Part shown: positions 7,368 to 46,738 of the stretch, in pieces
How positions within the stretch are numbered: position 1 is the stretch's first letter
Layout: each line of letters starts with the position of its first letter
NCBI GenBank assembly: GCA_052426225.1
Contig: JBNJNM010000014.1
Coordinates: forward strand, 496,001-560,000
Length of the DNA stretch: 64,000 nt
Direction: 5' to 3'
DNA from: Zancudomyces culisetae HAW-14-8
Taxonomy: Eukaryota; Fungi; Kickxellomycota
Position numbers and translations under genes: made by a program
The notes under the pieces: model-generated
Databases searched by the model: none
What the model was told of the DNA's origin: nothing
The model's input: only the letters and a program-made list of their open reading frames with translations

Positions 7368-8196
7368 TCAATTTTGTTTCTATGTCTACTTCCCCCCCCC
7401 CTCCATCAATAATTGAGCGATTTGAAAAATAGTTTTATCCTACTTTTATATATATTTATATATTTATATAAAGATTTAAATATTTCATTTTTGTTTTTTT
7501 TTAATAGACTTGTTTAATTTCTTTTAAAAGTATAAGAAATAGTGTTAATAAAATACAAACAGAATTTCATAATTTGAATGGTTATCCCATTTACACATTG
7601 GACTGATTGAAAACCAGACACAAGAGTGAATAGATACTTGCGAATATGTCAATAGCTTTGAAATTCATAATGTCAATCCACTTTATACAAAACAAACTGA
7701 CTATGGATTTTGAGAACACTGATGGTTACTATTTATTTTTTTATTTATGCTCACTTGCTCCAAAACTAATTGGAACTCGAATATATTATTGATGGATTGT
7801 ATCCAATCTACCTTTATAGCACTAATTCCCGTTCCTGTATTGTTTACGACAAACGTTTATCTTTTTCAAAAGTAAAATAATTCATACTATATGAAGCAGT
7901 ATATTCTACTACAAAGAATATAAAATGCCATAGTTTGCTACATCTCCTCAATATCTTGAATATTTCACTTTCCTCGCTACAAATCGTTTTATATAGTTTA
8001 CTTTTGACTATTTATCACATTTTGCTCAAAAAAAAATATAGTAAAGAAAAAACTATTTCTTAATAAATGACCAATGATTGTATTCTCATTGGCGGTTGAA
8101 ACTCGTTTGGAACCGTCCTTGATTCGCCCATCAAAAAAAGCACTGGCTGGGATGTTATAGCTATGGGGCTTGTAGAAAAGTCCGCAAAAAGGTAAC

Positions 8197-8269
8197 TGCT
8201 CTGGGTGAGGTTCGAACTCACGACCTTGAGATTATGAGACTCACGCTCTACCGACTGAGCCACCAAAGC
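8197..8269 (-). tRNA. tRNA-Met (CAU), elongator type
   Basis: Reverse complement GCTTTGGTGGCTCAGTCGGTAGAGCGTGAGTCTCATAATCTCAAGGTCGTGAGTTCGAACCTCACCCAGAGCA: 73-nt cloverleaf, TTCGAA T-loop, CAT anticodon, U31-U39 mismatch typical of eukaryotic elongator Met; T5 terminator at 8190-8186. Confidence 0.95.
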
Positions 8270-11200
8270 AATTTTTTTGTCGAGGTCTTGCTTTTTTTTT
8301 GTGTGCTAATGTACTACTTTTGTTTATTTTATATATAATTAAAAGTATTATTTTTTACTTTTATACCAAAATAGTTTTGTGAATTTGAATAGTCTATTAC
8401 ATTTATCAAGTAGGTTCAAAAAGCTTTTTTTTTTTAGGGTAAGGTGGTTGATATAACACTCTTCTATCGGCTTTTAACAGAATTCAATATATTTGCACAC
8501 ATCAATAAAACTCAAAAATACATTTTGAATTGGTAACCTTATTTTCTCTATACATTTGTATTCACAGCCTTAAACACGGTAAACAAGCTACATGTACAAT
8601 GCTTTTAATTAACAGTACATTGTTGTTTATATTTTTTTACCAAGATAAAACTGTAGTAACTGGGGTAAGTTTTAGAAAAATATCTTGTTTCAAAAAACTT
8701 TAGTACTGTATTTATAAGTGAGTGCTACATATTGGTGTTTTATTAGTTTGGAAGAGAAAAAAGAGTGAATATTTTCTTTATTTTAACTAATTTCCGAGTA
8801 GAGAGTACCTATTTATAAACCAAATGTACCTGAATGATGATGAGTCAGATAAGTATTGAGAGTGTATGTTGAATGAATTAAAATACCGACTACGCTAGTA
8901 AAAATAGATTTATTAAAAACCAAACACAACAACAGGTTTAACAAACTAAAAATAACGCAGTTTTTATACACGGACTATTACAATTTTTCGCAAAGCTATA
9001 TCGGCGGAGAAAGCAATTATGAAAAGGGGAGAGCGAGATTGAGTGAAGGGATAATGAAAAAACGGTATCGATAGCATCTCTAAATGAACAAACTGGACAC
9101 AATAGAAAAGGTTGGAGAGAAAAGAGAGAAAAGGAAAAAAAAAAGAAATCTGAAAAAGTTTTTTTTTTTTGGGTGTTCTGCTTTGCAACTGGGGTGTACT
9201 GATATGGCTAACATTGGGTAATTAAAGAAAAAATAAAGGAAGGAAGAAGGCAAGTCGAAAAGTAGTAGTAACATTTGTTGGTTTTAATTAACGGGGTTTT
9301 AAAGATATCATTTCACAGAAACAAAAGTGGTGTGAGGTTTTGGATACAATTATTAGTCAGAATTACAAAATAGCCGATTACATATTTCTAATAATACTGT
9401 TATACGTAAAACACTATTTCTCCTTGCTATCTTTGTAACGCCTACACACTGAAGAATGTGATGAGTAGTATGATATTCAGTTTTCTAAACCCACTCTTAT
9501 TTACTCTTTTGATCCACTACAACTAATGATAGTAATGATGATAGTAATAGTAATAGTAAAAGGCAAATAGTTGCGCAATTGTTTTGTATCCCCTACAATT
9601 ACAACTTTGAGTCCAATATTTTGCTTTTGTTTTTTTTAGTTGGCCTTTTCTATGTTAATAGTGGGAGTCTTTTTGTTGTGGACAATAAAACGGATTGGAA
9701 TTGAGAAGTTTATTCCTTGTAAATGGCGATACACTAATTGCTTTACTAATAATGAGAGACTTGTTTGTCGTTTATTTTATACTCTTTAGAAATGCGTGTT
9801 GATGTTAAAAATAAACTATAGATTTGTAAGAGTAGGCTCAAAATTTAAACAACAGATGTAGCTTATTCAGCAGTGATAAATTGTTCAACAAGTGAAAAGT
9901 TAAAAGAAAATTTTTTTATACACGTGTAACAAGTAAAATAATAATGAAACGATATCAATACCCGTTTAATAGCTACTTTATTAGCAAATAAATAGCGTAT
10001 TAATATATCATAGCCTAAAATAGAGTAAATGATTATTGAAGACACAAAGTGAGGAATAAAAGCAGATTGTACCATCCATACCACTTTAGATGTCCCAATC
10101 AAGTTAGCGGAGAGGATGCTAATATTTACTTTGTATAAATATCTCTATTCTGAAGTGAGTAAAGTATTATAAAATGACAAATGAAATGGTATATACTAGT
10201 ATGAGTCAGACGTCAAAAAAAAAAGATTGATGCAGTTACCAGCAAAATATAAGGTTTTATAATTGTTTTTCACTTGCCCATTTTTGTGGAAGAATTAAAC
10301 AGTGAATCAGCAGGATTCAACACCAATTCGCCATTTATGTATTTTTTGGGATGAAAAGTCAGTATAAGTAGTAGACCTTGTTTCTAACTCGTGCTGATAT
10401 TGTTGTGATAATATGGTAATATAATAATGATGGGTGTAAAGGACTATTGGCGTTTTTAAAATTTGTTTTCTATGGTGCAAATTGATAGTATAAGGGCTAA
10501 CCGCCAAACTGGTTGAGAAAAAAAAAAAGAAAAGTGGATGCTTTTTTTTTTTACTGCAAATTTTGTAATAGGGATATTAAAATTTTGCTTATTTATTGTA
10601 AATCCCAAAATACAAAAACTAAAAAAAAAAAGGGAGGAGAGCAAAGCTCATCTTTCCAATTTGATAGTTTGTTGCCCATTTTATCATAACCAACTATGAG
10701 AGTAAACAAGTAGTAGTGGTACTATTTGTATGGTTGTGCGAGTAAACAATAGCATATGAGTATAGGTGTGTTGCATTAATTTGTGTGTTCATTTTGCTTA
10801 AACTTTGGTGTGAGCAGAAATTGGTAAATCGGGAAAAGCGGGCAAAGCAATGTGTAAAGGATACAAAGTAGAAACAAGGGCGAAGGTTTAAAGTGTTTAA
10901 AAAACTTTGGTGACTTTTAATGTGTTACAAACTTGTAAGTTGAACGTACAAAAATAAATATAGACATTTCCATATTAAATGTAAGAATATTTCCATTTGA
11001 AGGGAAGCAGAGTTACCATCTTCGTTTATAGAAAATAATAGAGAGGATAATTATTTTAGATTTATAAGATACTTCAAACAAGGTCTTATTGTATAGTCAA
11101 TAGTAGGAAAAAAAAATAATTCGAGTCAGTAATGTTGAAAAAGTGTAAAAATAAAAAAAATGAGCTTAAACAAAATCCACTAAATAATCAATAAACCCAA

Positions 11201-33656: not shown

Positions 33657-36049
33657 TTCTTTAAACGTAAAATGTGTCCGGTTGTCTTTTTTTGATTTGT
33701 TGTTTTTGGCGTCCTTGTTCCCGATAAATATGATGTACTAATCCTCTTTCTTCAAAAAGACTTTTCTATTTTACAGTTTTGTTTGTAATCCAAGCTTAGT
33801 ATACTCTTCTTTATTGTGACATATAATCTTGAAAGGTGTATTTTGGATATATCTCTGAATACAAATTTGAACCTAAAGCACCGGCAAGAAAACACATACT
33901 CGTTCTCCTTTTTTTTTTTTGCTCGCGAGATGTTGGTGGAAACTCCGCTACTGACTCATCATACAGTTATAAACACAAAGTATACTTACCTATCCTGCAA
34001 ATGCTCCAACTTTTGAATACAAGAGGAAAATAAACGCTTTTTCAAAAGATTTTTTAGGAAAACTGTGTTAGTTTAATAAAGAGCAATTGAAACAAAAATG
34101 GCTTAAAAGTCAGAACCTTGTTTTTTTTTTAATTTTTGAAATTCTCGTTGTAGCTGTTAAATTATTTATTTAATTAATTTCTAATTATATTTGTAACACT
34201 ATTTCAGCGCGGTTCCTTGTAGCTTTAGCAAAAAAGAGGAAAAAAAAATTTTTTTTAATCGGCCTTTATGGCAATTGTAATCCCATTCAAACACCTTTTA
34301 AAAAAGTATTATGATTGTATTTATGATTTTCATATTTATGGTTCGAGCCAGTTTCCCTAATATTTTGCTATAATTTAATTTTTGCCTGGCAAGTCTTTAT
34401 TGCTAGATATTAGGGTGTAAATTCCGAACGAAATTACGTTAGATAATGCAAACACGCTAAGGGAAATATCTGTCAGTTAACTCGTTTAATATAAAGATTT
34501 CTATTATTAACTCTATATGCAATAATGCTTCTATTTATGAGCACCACGAAGATTTTCATATGTTGACAAAATCCGGTTTTTATTTTATCCGTTAAATTCT
34601 TTTTGATGTCTATGAGATAGTTCTCCATCTTTGCATAGTTTTTAGTTGCAGCGAGTATATGGCAATTTTTGGCGCTATTTCGTATCCCAAATTAACTTAG
34701 GCTTTTGAAAAATGACTGAAATTCAATGTTTATTTTTAGAAACAATAACTCAGCAAATAATATATTTGCCTTATTCTGCGAATATCTTTAGTGGAATCAT
34801 TCAAATCATCAGAATTTTTACACGTATCAAGTTGTAAAAATATCCGTTAACGGAAATGCACAATAAATGTAAAGAGCTCCTCCGTTCATTGATAAGATGA
34901 CCAAGAATATTGCTATATATAATTGGGGGATGCATTCCATTCTGTTCATAAATTCAGTGCCTAGGGAGTGTACATAAAGTAATATCTCAAACCCAATACA
35001 GTAGCCACCACACCTCCCAAATTTGCAGCGTAAAATCGTCAAATAAAAATAGATTGTATCTGCCTTTATATCATGTAGGACAAATCAAAATTGTAAAGCC
35101 TCGAGATTGTTCCTTTACACTGATTGCTTGTGATCAGCATCCAATAATCAAAACTAATTCAGAATAAAATCGAATAATCACAGTTCTGAATTGTTTTACA
35201 AAAAATTGAATCGATGACTGCCTATTTCATTTGTACAGGGAGGGAAATGAGAAGGTGGTGTGTTAGGCCTATTGTTTATTACACGTATGTACCATGCAAT
35301 AAGCAAAAACCCGTTGCAATAAAAAAATAAACACGAAAAAAATAAACCAATTAATTTAACAATTTGTAATGCAGAGAGCCTTTAAAGAAAGGCGAAATAC
35401 ATGATGGTTCAGGAGGGTACACTACACACGAAGAAACTAAAATATAATGCTCATGCTGTAATAGACCTTTTTGTTCAAGTAAGAATCTTATGGTCTGTAA
35501 CCAGCTTCCAAGCTAGCAATAAAGCTGTGTTATGCTTTACACTTTTATCATCATATCTGGACACTAATAGATAGTACGTTTGAAATTATTAATACGCAGT
35601 CAAATTGCGTGGCAGATTGTCATTCCCAGACTATAAATGAATAAAACTGATGTTATTTGCACCCATGTTGGGCTTTGGAAGTTGCTAGGTATGGTGATAT
35701 TCTCTGGTTGTTGTTTTATATATTTTTTACACCAGCAGAAAATCCAAAAGCGCAAAGTTGCAAGGAAAAAAAAGAAAAAAGCAAAAACTTTCTACCATCT
35801 CAGAAAAGCTCACACTTTTCCTACGAACACAAACCTTTTGAACAGATTATTGATTTAGTTGCACATACTAGACTAGTATTTCTTTTCTTTTGAATTATTT
35901 TATTAATAAATAAGCACTAATAAAAAAAGCAACAAATCGGCGAATCAGCAAATGGCGGAAATAAAAAATATATACCATATTTGGAATTATCATTCGGTTT
36001 AAATTCAAAAGATATATAAAGAACATCAACAATAGAATGAGAATATAGA

Positions 36050-38290
36050 ATGGATCAGGAAACAATACAGCTATTCGAAAATGTTCTTAAGAGCAAAAAG
36101 TACCTGGAAAAGGGAAGAGAAACTCAAAAAACAAGGCAAAACAAACTGAATTCACTATTGTCACAACAGAATTTGCCAGACGAAGGCTGGGACGAGGCGG
36201 ATATACTGTGGGTTTTGGATCAGCTGGCGAGTATGGACACCAACAACCAGAAAAGTAAGTTTTTTCTATCCTTTTCTTGCTTTTCTCTTCCATTTTTTTT
36301 CTAGATATTTAGCACTAACAATTCACAATAGAACCCATATTAATTGTATAAAGTTATCAACAACAAAGTTTAACAAAAAAAAACTCTGTACTTCTGAATA
36401 TCTTTTATTCTGACTATTTTTTTTTTCAAAAACAAAACCAAAAAAAGATCAAGTCGGTGTAGGTGAAAGAGAGGGAAGAGTTATATGTCCGATAGTGCAG
36501 AGAAGGCATTTTTAGTAAAACACGAGTTTCAATAGTTATATCATATACAAGCACCAATATCGATAAATATAATTTATGGAAGGTTAATGCGGACAGAACT
36601 AAACTGGTATGTAATGGAATGAAACATAGCCTTTCACATGGTATTGGGCGATCTGGCGATATTACGGAAATACAACCCAAAGCTGTTGGGTCTTCTATTC
36701 TCTACAAGTTGACAAACAAGCTGATTCTGGGAACATTAAAAATAGCTGGTACCTTTTTTTCTTTCTTATAAAAAAACCTAGTCAAATGTAACATTAGTGA
36801 ATACACATTCAATATTTGCACCAAAGAAAAGCCAATAATACCACGATACCTACTCTGTACATAGGAATATCCAAAAAGGCAGCTAAATCTGCCGTTGCAT
36901 TTCCAATGGCTACAGGAATGACACTCAGTCTGTGTATGCAAACAATAAAAAAAGTGTACAGACCAGAGTCAGGAAAATATGTATTGTGGATGCGGATCGA
37001 CCAAAAGTCGTGTTTTAAAGCAATATTCACTGCAGGATTAGTTCCAGTAGTAATAGAAAATATACTAGAGGGACAAGAAATAACAACAAATTTGGATTTG
37101 CTCGAGTCAAAAATCAATACACTGGGAGACAAGAATATAGTTTGTGTATATACCACCACATCGTGCTTTGCACCTCGAAGGCCAGACAAACTAGTTCAAG
37201 TAGCCAAGCTCTGCAAAAAGTATGAAATTCCGCATTTGGTAAATAATGCGTATGGATTACAATCAAAGCGATGCATGGGGCTGATCAACGAAGCTTGTAT
37301 CAGCGGAAGAGTGGACTGTTTTGTATTTAGCACTGACAAGAATTATTGTGTTCCGGTTGGAGGCGCAGTAGTCGCTGGTCCTAATCCAGAGCTGCTTGGC
37401 GAGATTTGCAAGATGTACCCAGGTAATTTTTAAACGTTTGTGGTTTGCAATTTTTGTGTATTTGATGAGGGAAAAAGAAGGGGTTATGGTTTTCATAGTC
37501 AGTTGTCAATATATTTTAATAGAAGAAATATGTGTTTCATAGGAAGGGCATCTGCAAGCCAAAGCATCGACGTCTTTACTACACTACTATACTTGGGAAA
37601 GCAAGGATTTAAGCAGCTTCTTTGTGAAAGGGAGGTAAGTATTGGTTTACAAGCAGTACCGCCTTTCGGTTGGTGATAAAGCTTTTATATACGTGCTCAA
37701 AGTATTTTTTATACCCGTTAAAGTTCTTACTGGTATGATATAATTATTTTAAAAAATAGGATTCCTTTCAGGAAATGAAAAGAGAGATAATAAAAAGATG
37801 CGAGCCCTTGGGAATAAAACTGCTGGACACACCAAACAATGACATTTCTATGGGTAAGGACTACGATACTAATTTGTAGATATTCATAAATCGTAATACC
37901 AAAATAACTTTAGTTGGATGTAACAATTAAAAGTAAACACATTGATAATACTTGAGCGGAGAAAATAAAAAGTACAATATAATAATTCCTTGACAACTTG
38001 TTATGTTCTTAGCTCTGTCATTGGAACAATATGTTGAACAAGGATCTTTTCTAGGATCCAAGCTCTTTTTGCGGAATGTATCGGGAGCAAGGAGCGTAAT
38101 ACCAGGCGATTCTAAAACGATTGAAACTCAATCTTTTAAAAACTGGTGTCAACATATCGACAACTACAATCCTAAATCCTTAACAGAGGAGGCGATTCCT
38201 TATTTAAACGTTGCTGTAGCAGTTGGATTTGACAAGAAAGATATTCATGGATTTATTGGCAGGCTGGAAGCTGTCCTAAGAGATAAATAA
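36050..38290 (+). CDS. SEPSECS: O-phosphoseryl-tRNA(Sec) selenium transferase / selenocysteine synthase (7 exons: 36050-36254, 36448-36514, 36630-36748, 36865-37422, 37543-37634, 37760-37853, 38013-38290)
   Basis: Spliced motifs [98 protein letters not shown] (PLP lysine) [40 protein letters not shown]; all six introns GT-AG and frame-preserving. Confidence 0.95.
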
Positions 38291-38294
38291 ACCG

Positions 38295-39806
38295 TCAAAC
38301 CATTTCGACTCGATTATCCCAAATTGATAAGACGCGGTCGATTACATTTTCGAGATATTCAGGTGAGTTTGCATCTATTTTTAGAGGGTTGGGTGGGATT
38401 TTCAGATCAAAATATGGGCCATAGTGTTCTGCAAACTTGTGTTCAGGAATCGTACCCGTTTCAGGATTAAGTTCATAGTCAGCTAGCAATGCTGTGAGTG
38501 TTGTCCAGCATTTTGCAGCGTTAGTATTTGCATAACCACCTCCACCAAGAACTAATAGTTTTTTGTTTATCGATTTTGCAATAAAACATTGTTTTAGAAA
38601 TCTGACGACATGTATATAAGAGTTTTCTGAAAGGTTCCAGGCATTTGTAGGGTCGCCGTTAAGCCCATCACAGCCACATTGAACCACAATCATTTCTGGA
38701 TCATAATCAGCCACTAAGGTAGGAACGATTCCGTCAAATGCTGTTATAAAGCTTGCATCGGTTAGATTTGAGTTCAATGGAATATTTAGTGAATAGCCTC
38801 TACCATAATTTTTACCAAACCCATCCACGTCTTCAAGCCCACCAGTTCCAGGAAAAAAAAATACGCCATCGTGGTTATGAATTGACACAGTTAATACGCT
38901 TTGACTGTATAAAAAGGCATTTTGAACTGCATCGCCATGGTGGACATCTAAATCCAAGTACATGACTCTATCAAACAACTTTTTCTTTTGGATGTGCAGC
39001 AGCCCAATGACTATATCGTTTACATAGCAAAACCCACTGGCTTGCCTACGCCTGGCATGGTGTCTGCCACCCTCCCAATTTAACGCTATCTGCATATTTT
39101 CGTTATTCAATAATTCGTCAATCGCTGTAAGTGTTCCTCCAACTACCTCTAAATTGTATTCCCAAACATGTTCAAAAATTGGGCAGTCGTATGCTAGTCC
39201 GTAGTCTGATATTTGCTCTTCAGATTCACTTGACGATTCTTCTTGTTCTATCAGTTCTGCGTTTTCTAGAAACTCTGAAAATATTTAACAAAGGTGCAAA
39301 AAAAAAGGGGGAGGTGTTAGGGTTGGTTGTGGGAGGGGGGGGGAGTTGAATTATATTTTCATGTGTTTGTTGCTGTTAATATCTTAAAATTGTATATACC
39401 TATATAGTCCTTGGAGTGATACAGCAATAGTTCACGTTTATCTGCTAATCGTGCTGGCTTGGTTTTTAGTTTCCCACTATTTTAAGAATATTCTTTTTAA
39501 TAAAGCTACAGATCTGGTGTTGGCCGAAATTATAAAAAAAAATTGAAACGTAGGAGATAAGTTATATTAAGTAGTACTTTCTTACCATTTCTGGATCCCA
39601 TATGCTTGTATCAAACTGTGTACAAAGCTTGACTACGTATTGTAAGTAGAGAAAAAAAAGTGTGAAAAAACATGGTACAGAATAAACATAGTGTATTTAT
39701 ATTAGCCAGATATGGAAATGTGGGGATGGTTGATTACTCTATGTAGGTTTGATGGTAACAGATCGGCTATTTCGCAATTTTTTCTTGGCTGAACAAGAAC
39801 CACCAT
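38295..39806 (-). CDS. Class I histone deacetylase, Hos1/HDAC8-like (4 exons: 39806-39738, 39632-39586, 39476-39400, 39274-38295)
   Basis: ADLLPSNLHRSSFVHSLIQAYG, YHSKDYIEFL, YGLAYDCP, NWEGGRHHA, ASGFCYVNDIV, YLDLDVHHGDAVQNAF, FFPGTG, QCGCDGLNGDP, LGGGGY. Confidence 0.92.
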
Positions 39807-43849: not shown

Positions 43850-46738
43850 ATGGAAACTGTTGGGGCAGGGGGGCGAAATGGAGGTATATATAGTGCAGTG
43901 TATTCGGGCGTAAAGGTGTATGAGACAGTGTGTAGAGGAGTGGCTGTGATGAAGCGGCAGACAGATTCATGGCTGAATGCAACACAGTTGTTGAAGGTGG
44001 CAGGAATAGATAAGGGAAGAAGGACCAAGATTCTAGAGCGAGAGATTTTGAAGGGGGTGCATGAGAAGGTACAAGGAGGATATGGCAAATATCAAGGAAC
44101 ATGGATTCCGTATGACAAGGGGTTAGAGCTGTGTGAAAAATATGGGGTGATGCAACATCTCAAAGATATATTGGAGTATGGGCCATCAACGGTGGAAGGA
44201 ATAGACCAGACACCGACAAAGGCACAGCTAAAGCGGCAGATGCTGGCGGAGCAGAAGCTGAGCGCACGGCAGAACCCGTCGATAATAAAGAAGAAGAGAA
44301 AGGAACAGGGTGTGGTAGGGACGGCAGAAGCGCAAGGGGCAATGGTGAATGGATATGTAGGGGCAAATGTAAAGAGGAGTAGACATGAAGAGAAGTATGG
44401 TGGAGCGGGAGTAGGAATGGTGATGGATAGCGAAAATGGAAACAATAGGCTAAAAGAAGAGAACAACGAGGGGTATGAAATGAATATATACAGTTTAAAC
44501 AAACAATACATAGGTCGAGCTGGGCGACCAAATGGGGTGAAGGATACAGACAGCAAGAAACACGATAGAGAAGGGCGCCGGCCACGGCTGGGAAAGTTTG
44601 GTGAAGCGGCGGGACGACAGGAGGACGAGGACCGACGAGCGCAGGACCAGCTAGTGATGATGGAGATATTTATGGACGAGCGGCCAAACTACGTGCCGGA
44701 GTGGCTCGCACGAGGCGGCGAAGGGATCCAAGTAGATTTAAATGTGATAATTGATGAGTACGGACACACGTCAGTTCATTGGGCAGCGGCACTGGCAAGA
44801 ATCGAGGTGTTGGATTTGTTGTTGGCAAACGGAGCAGATGCAAAACGGTTAGATTATGATGGAGAATCAGCACTGATCAAAGCGGTGCAGGTAACCAACA
44901 ACTACGAGACACAGGTATTCCATGAACTGCTAGAACTACTACACGACGCAATTCCGCTGACAGACAAAAGCAACAAAACAGTACTGCATCACATTGCAAA
45001 CACAGCAGGAATTGCAGGCCGCGGCAACGCTGCTCGCTACTACATGGAGTGTCTGTTGGCTTGGATTACACGGCTGGCTGGTGGATTTGTAGTCGACAAC
45101 TCATCAGCTGACACTTACTCAGCCTCCAAAAGCTACAAGCACGCTTTGTTTGCCACTCCTGCATCTCAGCGCCGCAAACTGACGGGCCGGCCATCCGCAG
45201 ACACAGAATATTCGCCGGCAAACAGAGATGCGCCGTCAGCTGACCTGGCTGCGTTTCTGGATCTACAGGATGCTAATGGCGACACTGCGCTTAACATCGC
45301 GTCTCGTGTTGGCGACCGAGCGATTGTGCAGCTGTTGATGTCTGTGGGAGCTTCTTCTACCATTCCAAACAACTCGGGTCTCAGGCCTTCTGATTTTTGG
45401 GGCGCCGACACGCCCTACGACTCTTCTACAACCCTGCCTCTTTCCTCTGCCAAGAAGACTCCGATTGTCAATTCAAATGTTACCACAACTTCTGTTCGAT
45501 CCACTGGAAGCAACCGCCAACTCTACAAATCGCATCAACCTTATGACTTTAGTTCTTTGACTACTCCAAATTCTATACGCTACTCTAATACTCGTGGTAG
45601 TAGTGATCCTCGCAACTACTACCATAGAAAGAGTGCTGAACCTCCCAATCCTTCGTTTACCTATCCTACCACTACCCCTGCTGCCATTCATTCTTCTGCT
45701 CACAGTTCCAACACTTCCAGTGCCACCAGCACCAAGAGCATTCCTCTTTCCTCCAAACCCCTTACCGACCCAAAAGAAAACCGCCGCCTGTTTTATCCCC
45801 CAAACCACTCCCACCTTCGTACCTCTTCTTCTTCCTCGCAATCCCTCTCCACCCTCAATTCTATTCGTGCCTTAGTCAGCGACCTGGATCTCGAATTTAG
45901 ATCCGAATTGAATTCCAAAAACGACCAAATCAAGGCCCTGAAAGACCAGCTCGACTCTCTCAATGCCCAGCTGGCTGACCAGAGAGATGTGTTTAGGAAG
46001 CACGCTGACTCTCTTGTACTGGTTGACCAAATGAAGCAGCAAGTCGCTTCCCTCGAGTTCCAGTTGGACCAGATCAAATCCTTTGACCCATCCCTTTCTT
46101 CACCCCATTCCCATTCCCATGAATTTGTTTCTTGTCTCAACTCACTTCTCAACACAAATTCAAATAATGTTCATGACTTGCTTGAAATGCTGACTGTACC
46201 TAATATTCTGGCCAGTAAGAACAGTCCTTCCGCAGGTGATTATCATCGGATTATTGAAAATCTATCCAATCTCGTCTCGCTTGTTGTCAAAGACAATGTA
46301 CAAATGAAGGACTCGTTGTCACTTCTTCAACTGAACAGACAGAATCTAAACCAAGCACTGAAAATATGTTTAGACGAAAAGTACAACGAAGATGGTGCTG
46401 GCAATGCACAGCTTGATGACAGCCAAGCAAACGGAGTGGGGAGTCCAAAAAACATTTCTACAAGCAGGAATGGTCAGTCAAACTCTGGAAACGCAAACGC
46501 AAACGCATTTGCATCCAAGTCATCAGAGCGCTGGCTCGAGAAGCTTGATCAACTTGTATCTTCTTTTGTTAGTAGTAATACAAGCGATGCCAATGTCGGT
46601 ACCAATCCTGCCACTATTAATAACGCTATTGAGCAGGATAATACTTCTAATGATAATGATGATATTGGTACAAACTCTGCATCTCGGAAAAAGTTGAAGA
46701 GTGCACTTGTCAATTTGGTAAATATAATAGATAGCTGA
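43850..46738 (+). CDS. G1/S transcription factor, Mbp1/Swi4/Res family (APSES/KilA-N domain, ankyrin repeats, coiled coil)
   Basis: IYSAVYSGVKVYE...WLNATQLLKVAGIDKGRRTKILEREI..HEKVQGGYGKYQGTWIP; IDEYGHTSVHWAAALAR; QDANGDTALNIASRVG. Confidence 0.95.
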   Translation: METVGAGGRNGGIYSAVYSGVKVYETVCRGVAVMKRQTDSWLNATQLLKVAGIDKGRRTKILEREILKGVHEKVQGGYGKYQGTWIPYDKGLELCEKYGVMQHLKDILEYGPSTVEGIDQTPTKAQLKRQMLAEQKLSARQNPSIIKKKRKEQGVVGTAEAQGAMVNGYVGANVKRSRHEEKYGGAGVGMVMDSENGNNRLKEENNEGYEMNIYSLNKQYIGRAGRPNGVKDTDSKKHDREGRRPRLGKFGEAAGRQEDEDRRAQDQLVMMEIFMDERPNYVPEWLARGGEGIQVDLNVIIDEYGHTSVHWAAALARIEVLDLLLANGADAKRLDYDGESALIKAVQVTNNYETQVFHELLELLHDAIPLTDKSNKTVLHHIANTAGIAGRGNAARYYMECLLAWITRLAGGFVVDNSSADTYSASKSYKHALFATPASQRRKLTGRPSADTEYSPANRDAPSADLAAFLDLQDANGDTALNIASRVGDRAIVQLLMSVGASSTIPNNSGLRPSDFWGADTPYDSSTTLPLSSAKKTPIVNSNVTTTSVRSTGSNRQLYKSHQPYDFSSLTTPNSIRYSNTRGSSDPRNYYHRKSAEPPNPSFTYPTTTPAAIHSSAHSSNTSSATSTKSIPLSSKPLTDPKENRRLFYPPNHSHLRTSSSSSQSLSTLNSIRALVSDLDLEFRSELNSKNDQIKALKDQLDSLNAQLADQRDVFRKHADSLVLVDQMKQQVASLEFQLDQIKSFDPSLSSPHSHSHEFVSCLNSLLNTNSNNVHDLLEMLTVPNILASKNSPSAGDYHRIIENLSNLVSLVVKDNVQMKDSLSLLQLNRQNLNQALKICLDEKYNEDGAGNAQLDDSQANGVGSPKNISTSRNGQSNSGNANANAFASKSSERWLEKLDQLVSSFVSSNTSDANVGTNPATINNAIEQDNTSNDNDDIGTNSASRKKLKSALVNLVNIIDS

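Follow-up and report, generated by a model that had tools for sequence, protein, structure and literature searches.

Does the selenocysteine synthase (SepSecS) gene that is encoded in the genome of the fungus Zancudomyces culisetae HAW-14-8 serve a working selenocysteine (Sec) pathway, or is it a remnant, a contaminant, or a gift from an animal host? The gene lies in a 64-kb stretch of contig C14 (C14:496001-560000), which we call the window, and we searched for its partners in the whole assembly (27,093,596 bases in 25 contigs). The evidence set out below indicates that the locus is almost certainly a single, intact, vertically inherited SepSecS of Z. culisetae, and part of a working eukaryotic Sec pathway.

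A preliminary description of the window had reported seven exons that splice into a full-length SepSecS with all hallmark motifs and no disabling lesion, and our gene model agrees with it. The gene (36050-38290) has seven exons and six introns on the forward strand, as a frame check of the joined exons confirmed (Table 1). Its coding sequence of 1413 nt specifies 470 amino acids followed by TAA and has no internal stop. All six introns run from GT to AG, are 115 to 193 nt long, and are AT-rich. Exons were joined for this frame check only, and were otherwise searched and aligned one by one. The motifs are present as described, including the pyridoxal phosphate (PLP) lysine in STDKN. A search of all contigs for a second SepSecS locus found none.

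Table 1. The SepSecS gene, a fungal marker gene of its contig, and the Sec genes found elsewhere in the genome. Positions given without a contig are those of the window.
Feature	Position	Strand	Description
SepSecS exon 1	36050..36254	+	ATG, N-terminal helices; aligns to residues 1-66 of animal SepSecS
SepSecS exon 2	36448..36514	+	GEREGR motif; Arg75 equivalent at 36468
SepSecS exon 3	36630..36748	+	HGIGRSGD and QPKA motifs
Residue equivalents in exon 3	Arg97 36649, Ser98 36652, Gln105 36673, Lys107 36679	+	
SepSecS exon 4	36865..37422	+	PLP-binding core: RIDQKSC, NNAYG, STDKN; Lys284 equivalent (Lys codon) at 37338
SepSecS exon 5	37543..37634	+	GRAS; Arg313 equivalent at 37545
SepSecS exon 6	37760..37853	+	Both ends correspond to coral and fish introns (342/0 and 373/1)
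SepSecS exon 7	38013..38290	+	Arg398 equivalent at 38072; TAA 38288-38290; without the mammalian helix-16 extension
SepSecS introns, span 36255..38012	36255-36447, 36515-36629, 36749-36864, 37423-37542, 37635-37759, 37854-38012	+	Phases 1, 2, 1, 1, 0, 1
KilA-N and ankyrin protein	43850-46738		Mbp1/Swi4/Swi6 type; fungal marker for the contig
tRNA-Sec	C12:2376020-2376107		RF01852, 57.9 bits (gathering score 47); anticodon UCA
PSTK	C21:3237130-3238446		439-aa ORF; TIGR03575 E 1.7e-6 (below the curated cut-off)
eEFSec	C6, about 499.3-501.9 kb		GTPase start and PF21208 domain III, 76.5 bits (cut-off 27)
SPS	C21, about 462.1-463.5 kb		TIGR00476 in three exons; in-frame TGA at 463453
SelenoH	C11, TGA at 3954438		IEHCTR-TGA-RVF and downstream exon GPPRKLKFP

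The SepSecS profile PF05889 matched exons 2, 3, 4, and 7 in profile order, with 16.1, 51.6, 218.8, and 32.9 bits, and the last three of these exceed the curated cut-off of 21.1 bits. Exons 1, 5, and 6 had no Pfam match singly, yet they align colinearly to animal SepSecS. Against solved structures, exon 4 matched mouse and human SepSecS (PDB 3BC8/3HL2) with 219 bits (E about 1e-64), versus 104 bits for the archaeal SepSecS structure. The protein is of the eukaryotic type: its 470 residues fall within the range of about 460-500, and it has the N-terminal helices and an equivalent of Arg398.

We then compared individual residues by aligning each exon with an ortholog from a primate (P0223), in which the catalytic residues are those of the human enzyme and bear the same numbers. 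R75, R97, S98, Q105, K107, Q172, K173, N252, Y255, K284, R313, and R398 all have identical counterparts in the Zancudomyces protein, in which L and N take the places of T397 and Q399. Active-site roles have reportedly been assigned to Arg97, Ser98, Gln105, Gln172/Lys173, and Arg313. Lys284 is the lysine that forms the Schiff base with PLP, and Arg75 contacts PLP (PMC11047290), whereas Arg398 reads the discriminator G73 of tRNA-Sec (PMC11602143). The Zancudomyces protein thus resembles human and mouse SEPSECS (PDB 3HL2, 7L1T, and 3BC8) in both its catalytic and its G73-reading residues, with a core identity of about 55-58%. It differs from them in short insertions in exons 4 and 7 and in being without the C-terminal helix 16, which is a mammalian innovation (PMC11602143).

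A SepSecS alone makes no selenoprotein, and the preliminary description had predicted that the genome should also encode tRNA-Sec, PSTK, SPS, eEFSec, and SBP2, none of which it had found in the window. Our searches of the 64 kb likewise found no other Sec gene, and the sole tRNA there is a tRNA-Met (8196-8270). On other contigs, however, we found tRNA-Sec, PSTK, SPS, and eEFSec (Table 1). The tRNA-Sec has a 6-bp D stem and a long variable arm, with a fold consistent with the eukaryotic 9/4 type, and its gene has a G after the acceptor stem and then a run of T. PSTK shares 98% identity with OMH84707.1 of Z. culisetae, the UniRef name of which is L-seryl-tRNA(Sec) kinase. The PSTK locus and a contig of Z. 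culisetae COL-18-3 share 99.18% DNA identity over 3309 nt, by which measure the two are the same species but different strains. A PF08433 match elsewhere in the genome proved to be KTI12, not PSTK. Of the predicted set, SBP2 is the one that we did not locate in the genome with an L7Ae profile, a Snu13 query, or two DNA patterns. It has been listed for the Z. culisetae transcriptome only, in a supplement (PMC12611240).

The genome had also been expected to encode selenoproteins that standard annotation truncates, and we found two genes whose Sec position is an in-frame TGA codon. One is SPS itself, where the TGA stands in the motif KG-TGA-GCK. The other is SelenoH, which was found by a DNA pattern and was missed by the profiles PF10262 and TIGR02174. 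The best genome match of the SECIS model RF00031 had an E value of 0.5 and lay inside a coding region, and there was no canonical SECIS behind SPS or SelenoH in Rfam searches or pattern and fold scans covering 600-870 nt past the stop (C21 below 462073 for SPS and C11 above 3954770 for SelenoH). The two 3' regions have a 10-mer in common, which we estimate to be at about chance level. This outcome agrees with that of Mariotti et al., who could detect a SECIS in no more than 5 of the 16 selenoprotein genes from fungi (bioRxiv 10.1101/314781).

One extension of this picture is that Z. culisetae recodes UGA by means of a variant SECIS that escapes current models, and that it has a third selenoprotein, a SelK/SelS-like single-pass membrane protein. 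We think this possible but doubtful. The candidate is a two-exon frame on the forward strand (C11:4824645-4825251) of about 160 amino acids, with one hydrophobic stretch near the N terminus and the end GGGG-TGA-G-TAA. In local numbering, where the frame is 915-1521, its intron is 1233-1356 and in phase 0. The GGGG-Sec-G end and the single hydrophobic stretch recall SelK/SelS. However, the candidate had no support from Pfam or the Atlas, no SECIS was found for it, and its pattern is at chance frequency, with a reversed control pattern matching as often. The TGA also overlaps a possible GTGAGG donor, which has a pyrimidine-rich stretch and an AG downstream of it, and it may be part of that splice donor instead of a Sec codon. 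We list the frame as a weak SelK/SelS-like candidate that is absent from the published selenoprotein lists compared here.

Alternatively, SepSecS could be an orphan or decaying remnant, or an animal contaminant, in a fungus that no longer inserts Sec. Failure to find a SECIS, or to locate SBP2 in the genome searches, would fit such a state. Even so, we regard it as very improbable. A remnant is at odds with a lesion-free SepSecS in a genome that also has tRNA-Sec, PSTK, eEFSec, and SPS, with a TGA kept exactly at the known Sec positions of two genes, and with machinery that is expressed (PMC12611240). Contamination is at odds with the adjoining genes, which are fungal, and with the composition of the window, which is uniform at 27-50% GC. 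The window genes are eukaryotic housekeeping genes, and they include a fungal regulator of the Swi6/Mbp1 type (KilA-N/ankyrin), which scored 0.97 against Swi6-type clusters that are commonest in Ascomycota. An exact look-up of seven proteins of the window gave no match in the sequence collection, and it is the assembly and the fungal genes that tie contig C14 to Z. culisetae.

For an intact SepSecS in a working pathway, catalysis, assembly into a tetramer, and UGA read-through would follow the established biochemistry of the enzyme. SerRS would charge tRNA-Sec with Ser, PSTK would phosphorylate the resulting Ser-tRNA-Sec, and SPS would supply selenophosphate. SepSecS would bind tRNA-Sec, with the discriminator G73 read through its Arg398 equivalent, and would use the Lys284-PLP Schiff base to eliminate the phosphate before adding selenium, yielding Sec-tRNA. 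eEFSec, together with SBP2, would then deliver Sec-tRNA to the in-frame UGA codons of SPS and SelenoH. We found no literature report of direct biochemical proof (75Se labelling) that Z. culisetae uses Sec.

Where did the gene come from? BLAST and phylogeny had been proposed as the means to separate vertical from horizontal origin. With exon 4 they did not settle the matter, and it is the introns that favour a vertical origin. We rebuilt the structures of animal genes from exact spliced matches and mapped the window exons, one at a time, to these structures. The comparison comprised Pocillopora (a coral), Festucalex (a fish), and Drosophila santomea. Six of the six introns coincide with Pocillopora introns in both codon and phase (67/1, which is the intron after exon 1, and 89/2, 129/1, 311/1, 342/0, and 373/1). 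The same is true of five of the six for Festucalex and of none for D. santomea. With 11 sites to hit among about 1400 positions, the probability that all six introns would match exactly is roughly (11/1400)^6, which puts chance out of the question. Therefore, the coral matches confirm the exon boundaries of our SepSecS model. The concordance also points to descent from an opisthokont ancestor and away from origin as a retrocopy or by transfer from bacteria or a fly-like donor, as far as gene structure can tell.

The trees were built from exon 4 alone and included no identified Harpellales homologue. The top BLAST identities of exon 4 were to animals (56-61%), and a two-row profile search for SepSecS homologues returned animals only. 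The best match of exon 4 among 50%-cluster representatives was from a fungus, Jimgerdemannia (RUS15504.1; Mucoromycota), with 221.6 bits and 56% identity. In the trees, exon 4 fell among animal and fungal homologues, with fungal monophyly left unsettled, and outside the arthropod clade (80/89 support, IQ-TREE). RUS15504.1 was not its sister. Neither of two groupings put to an AU test was rejected: exon 4 with Jimgerdemannia gave a p-AU of 0.14, and exon 4 with Drosophila gave a p-AU of 0.16. Horizontal acquisition from a dipteran host, which would make the absence of SecS from the older COL-18-3 assembly real, has a precedent in the reported host origin of a polyubiquitin gene of Z. culisetae and could draw on that absence, the animal BLAST identities, and the Drosophila test, but we consider it extremely unlikely, because the introns match those of coral and fish and not Drosophila, exon 4 lies outside the arthropods, a recent transfer would give an identity far above the about 55% seen to insects, and Yang and Wang put the COL-18-3 absence down to a fragmented assembly (PMC12611240).

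Mariotti et al. argued that fungal Sec use was inherited vertically, and Z. culisetae is one of the five Sec-using fungi that they reported, with a Sec-containing SPS and SelenoH (bioRxiv 10.1101/314781). The system had been judged from the window to be rare but not undescribed unless the species was a new lineage, which was apt: Z. culisetae belongs to the Harpellales and was already described as Sec-using. It is like the other early-diverging fungi of that study in its eukaryotic-type tRNA-Sec, PSTK, Sec-containing SPS, eEFSec, and SelenoH, as well as in vertical inheritance and in SECIS elements that often go undetected (bioRxiv 10.1101/314781). Of the components, SecS alone was lacking in the assembly of Z. 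culisetae that Mariotti et al. used (PMC12611240). Yang and Wang (2025, G3) recovered a SecS homolog in a HiFi assembly of HAW-14-8 (27,184,066 bases, 26 contigs, 35.56% GC) and also in the transcriptome, and found the machinery to be expressed (PMC12611240). Their homolog and the window SepSecS are very probably the same gene: the species is the same, there is one genomic SecS match, and the partners are the same (SPS, eEFsec, pstk, and Sec-SelH).

The SepSecS gene of Z. culisetae is already known, and with it the Sec synthesis pathway is complete, as reported in 2025, in a fungus that can be cultured and whose genome is nearly complete. Therefore, Z. culisetae is a practical system for the study of UGA recoding without a recognisable SECIS in Harpellales. 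Our own small addition is the complete intron concordance with the coral gene, which, as an argument from gene structure, favours vertical inheritance over a fly-like donor. Together with the five positions held in common with a vertebrate gene, it lends modest, independent weight to the view that Sec use was inherited vertically from an opisthokont ancestor.

Some further observations concern the homologues, the assembly, and the locus. Jimgerdemannia (Endogonales, GCA_003990765.1) is a fungus with SepSecS outside the five species of the Mariotti preprint. Its RUS15504.1 is partial, lies on a 2.1-kb contig, and appears to be wrongly modelled, as the region of exons 2 and 3 seems to be missing from the model. 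In the HAW-14-8 assembly, several loci occur in pairs with the same or nearly identical scores and spacing (C19:125689/148239 with C21:2454830/2477147, C6:2159921 with C12:691611, and C6:2442054 with C12:421181). These pairs point either to segmental duplication or to redundancy among the contigs.

At the SepSecS locus, some splice signals are weak. The acceptors of introns 1 and 5 are A-rich and without a polypyrimidine tract, and the donors of introns 2 and 3 are GTAAAA and GTACCT. All four of these introns are still at conserved ancestral positions. A three-codon upstream ORF (36037-36048; ATG AGA ATA TAG), which may lie in the 5' UTR, stops one base before the SepSecS ATG. At the other end, the SepSecS stop at 38290 is 4 bp from the stop of a histone deacetylase gene on the reverse strand (38295-39110 and upstream exons). 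Therefore, the 3' UTR of each gene must overlap the coding end of the other.
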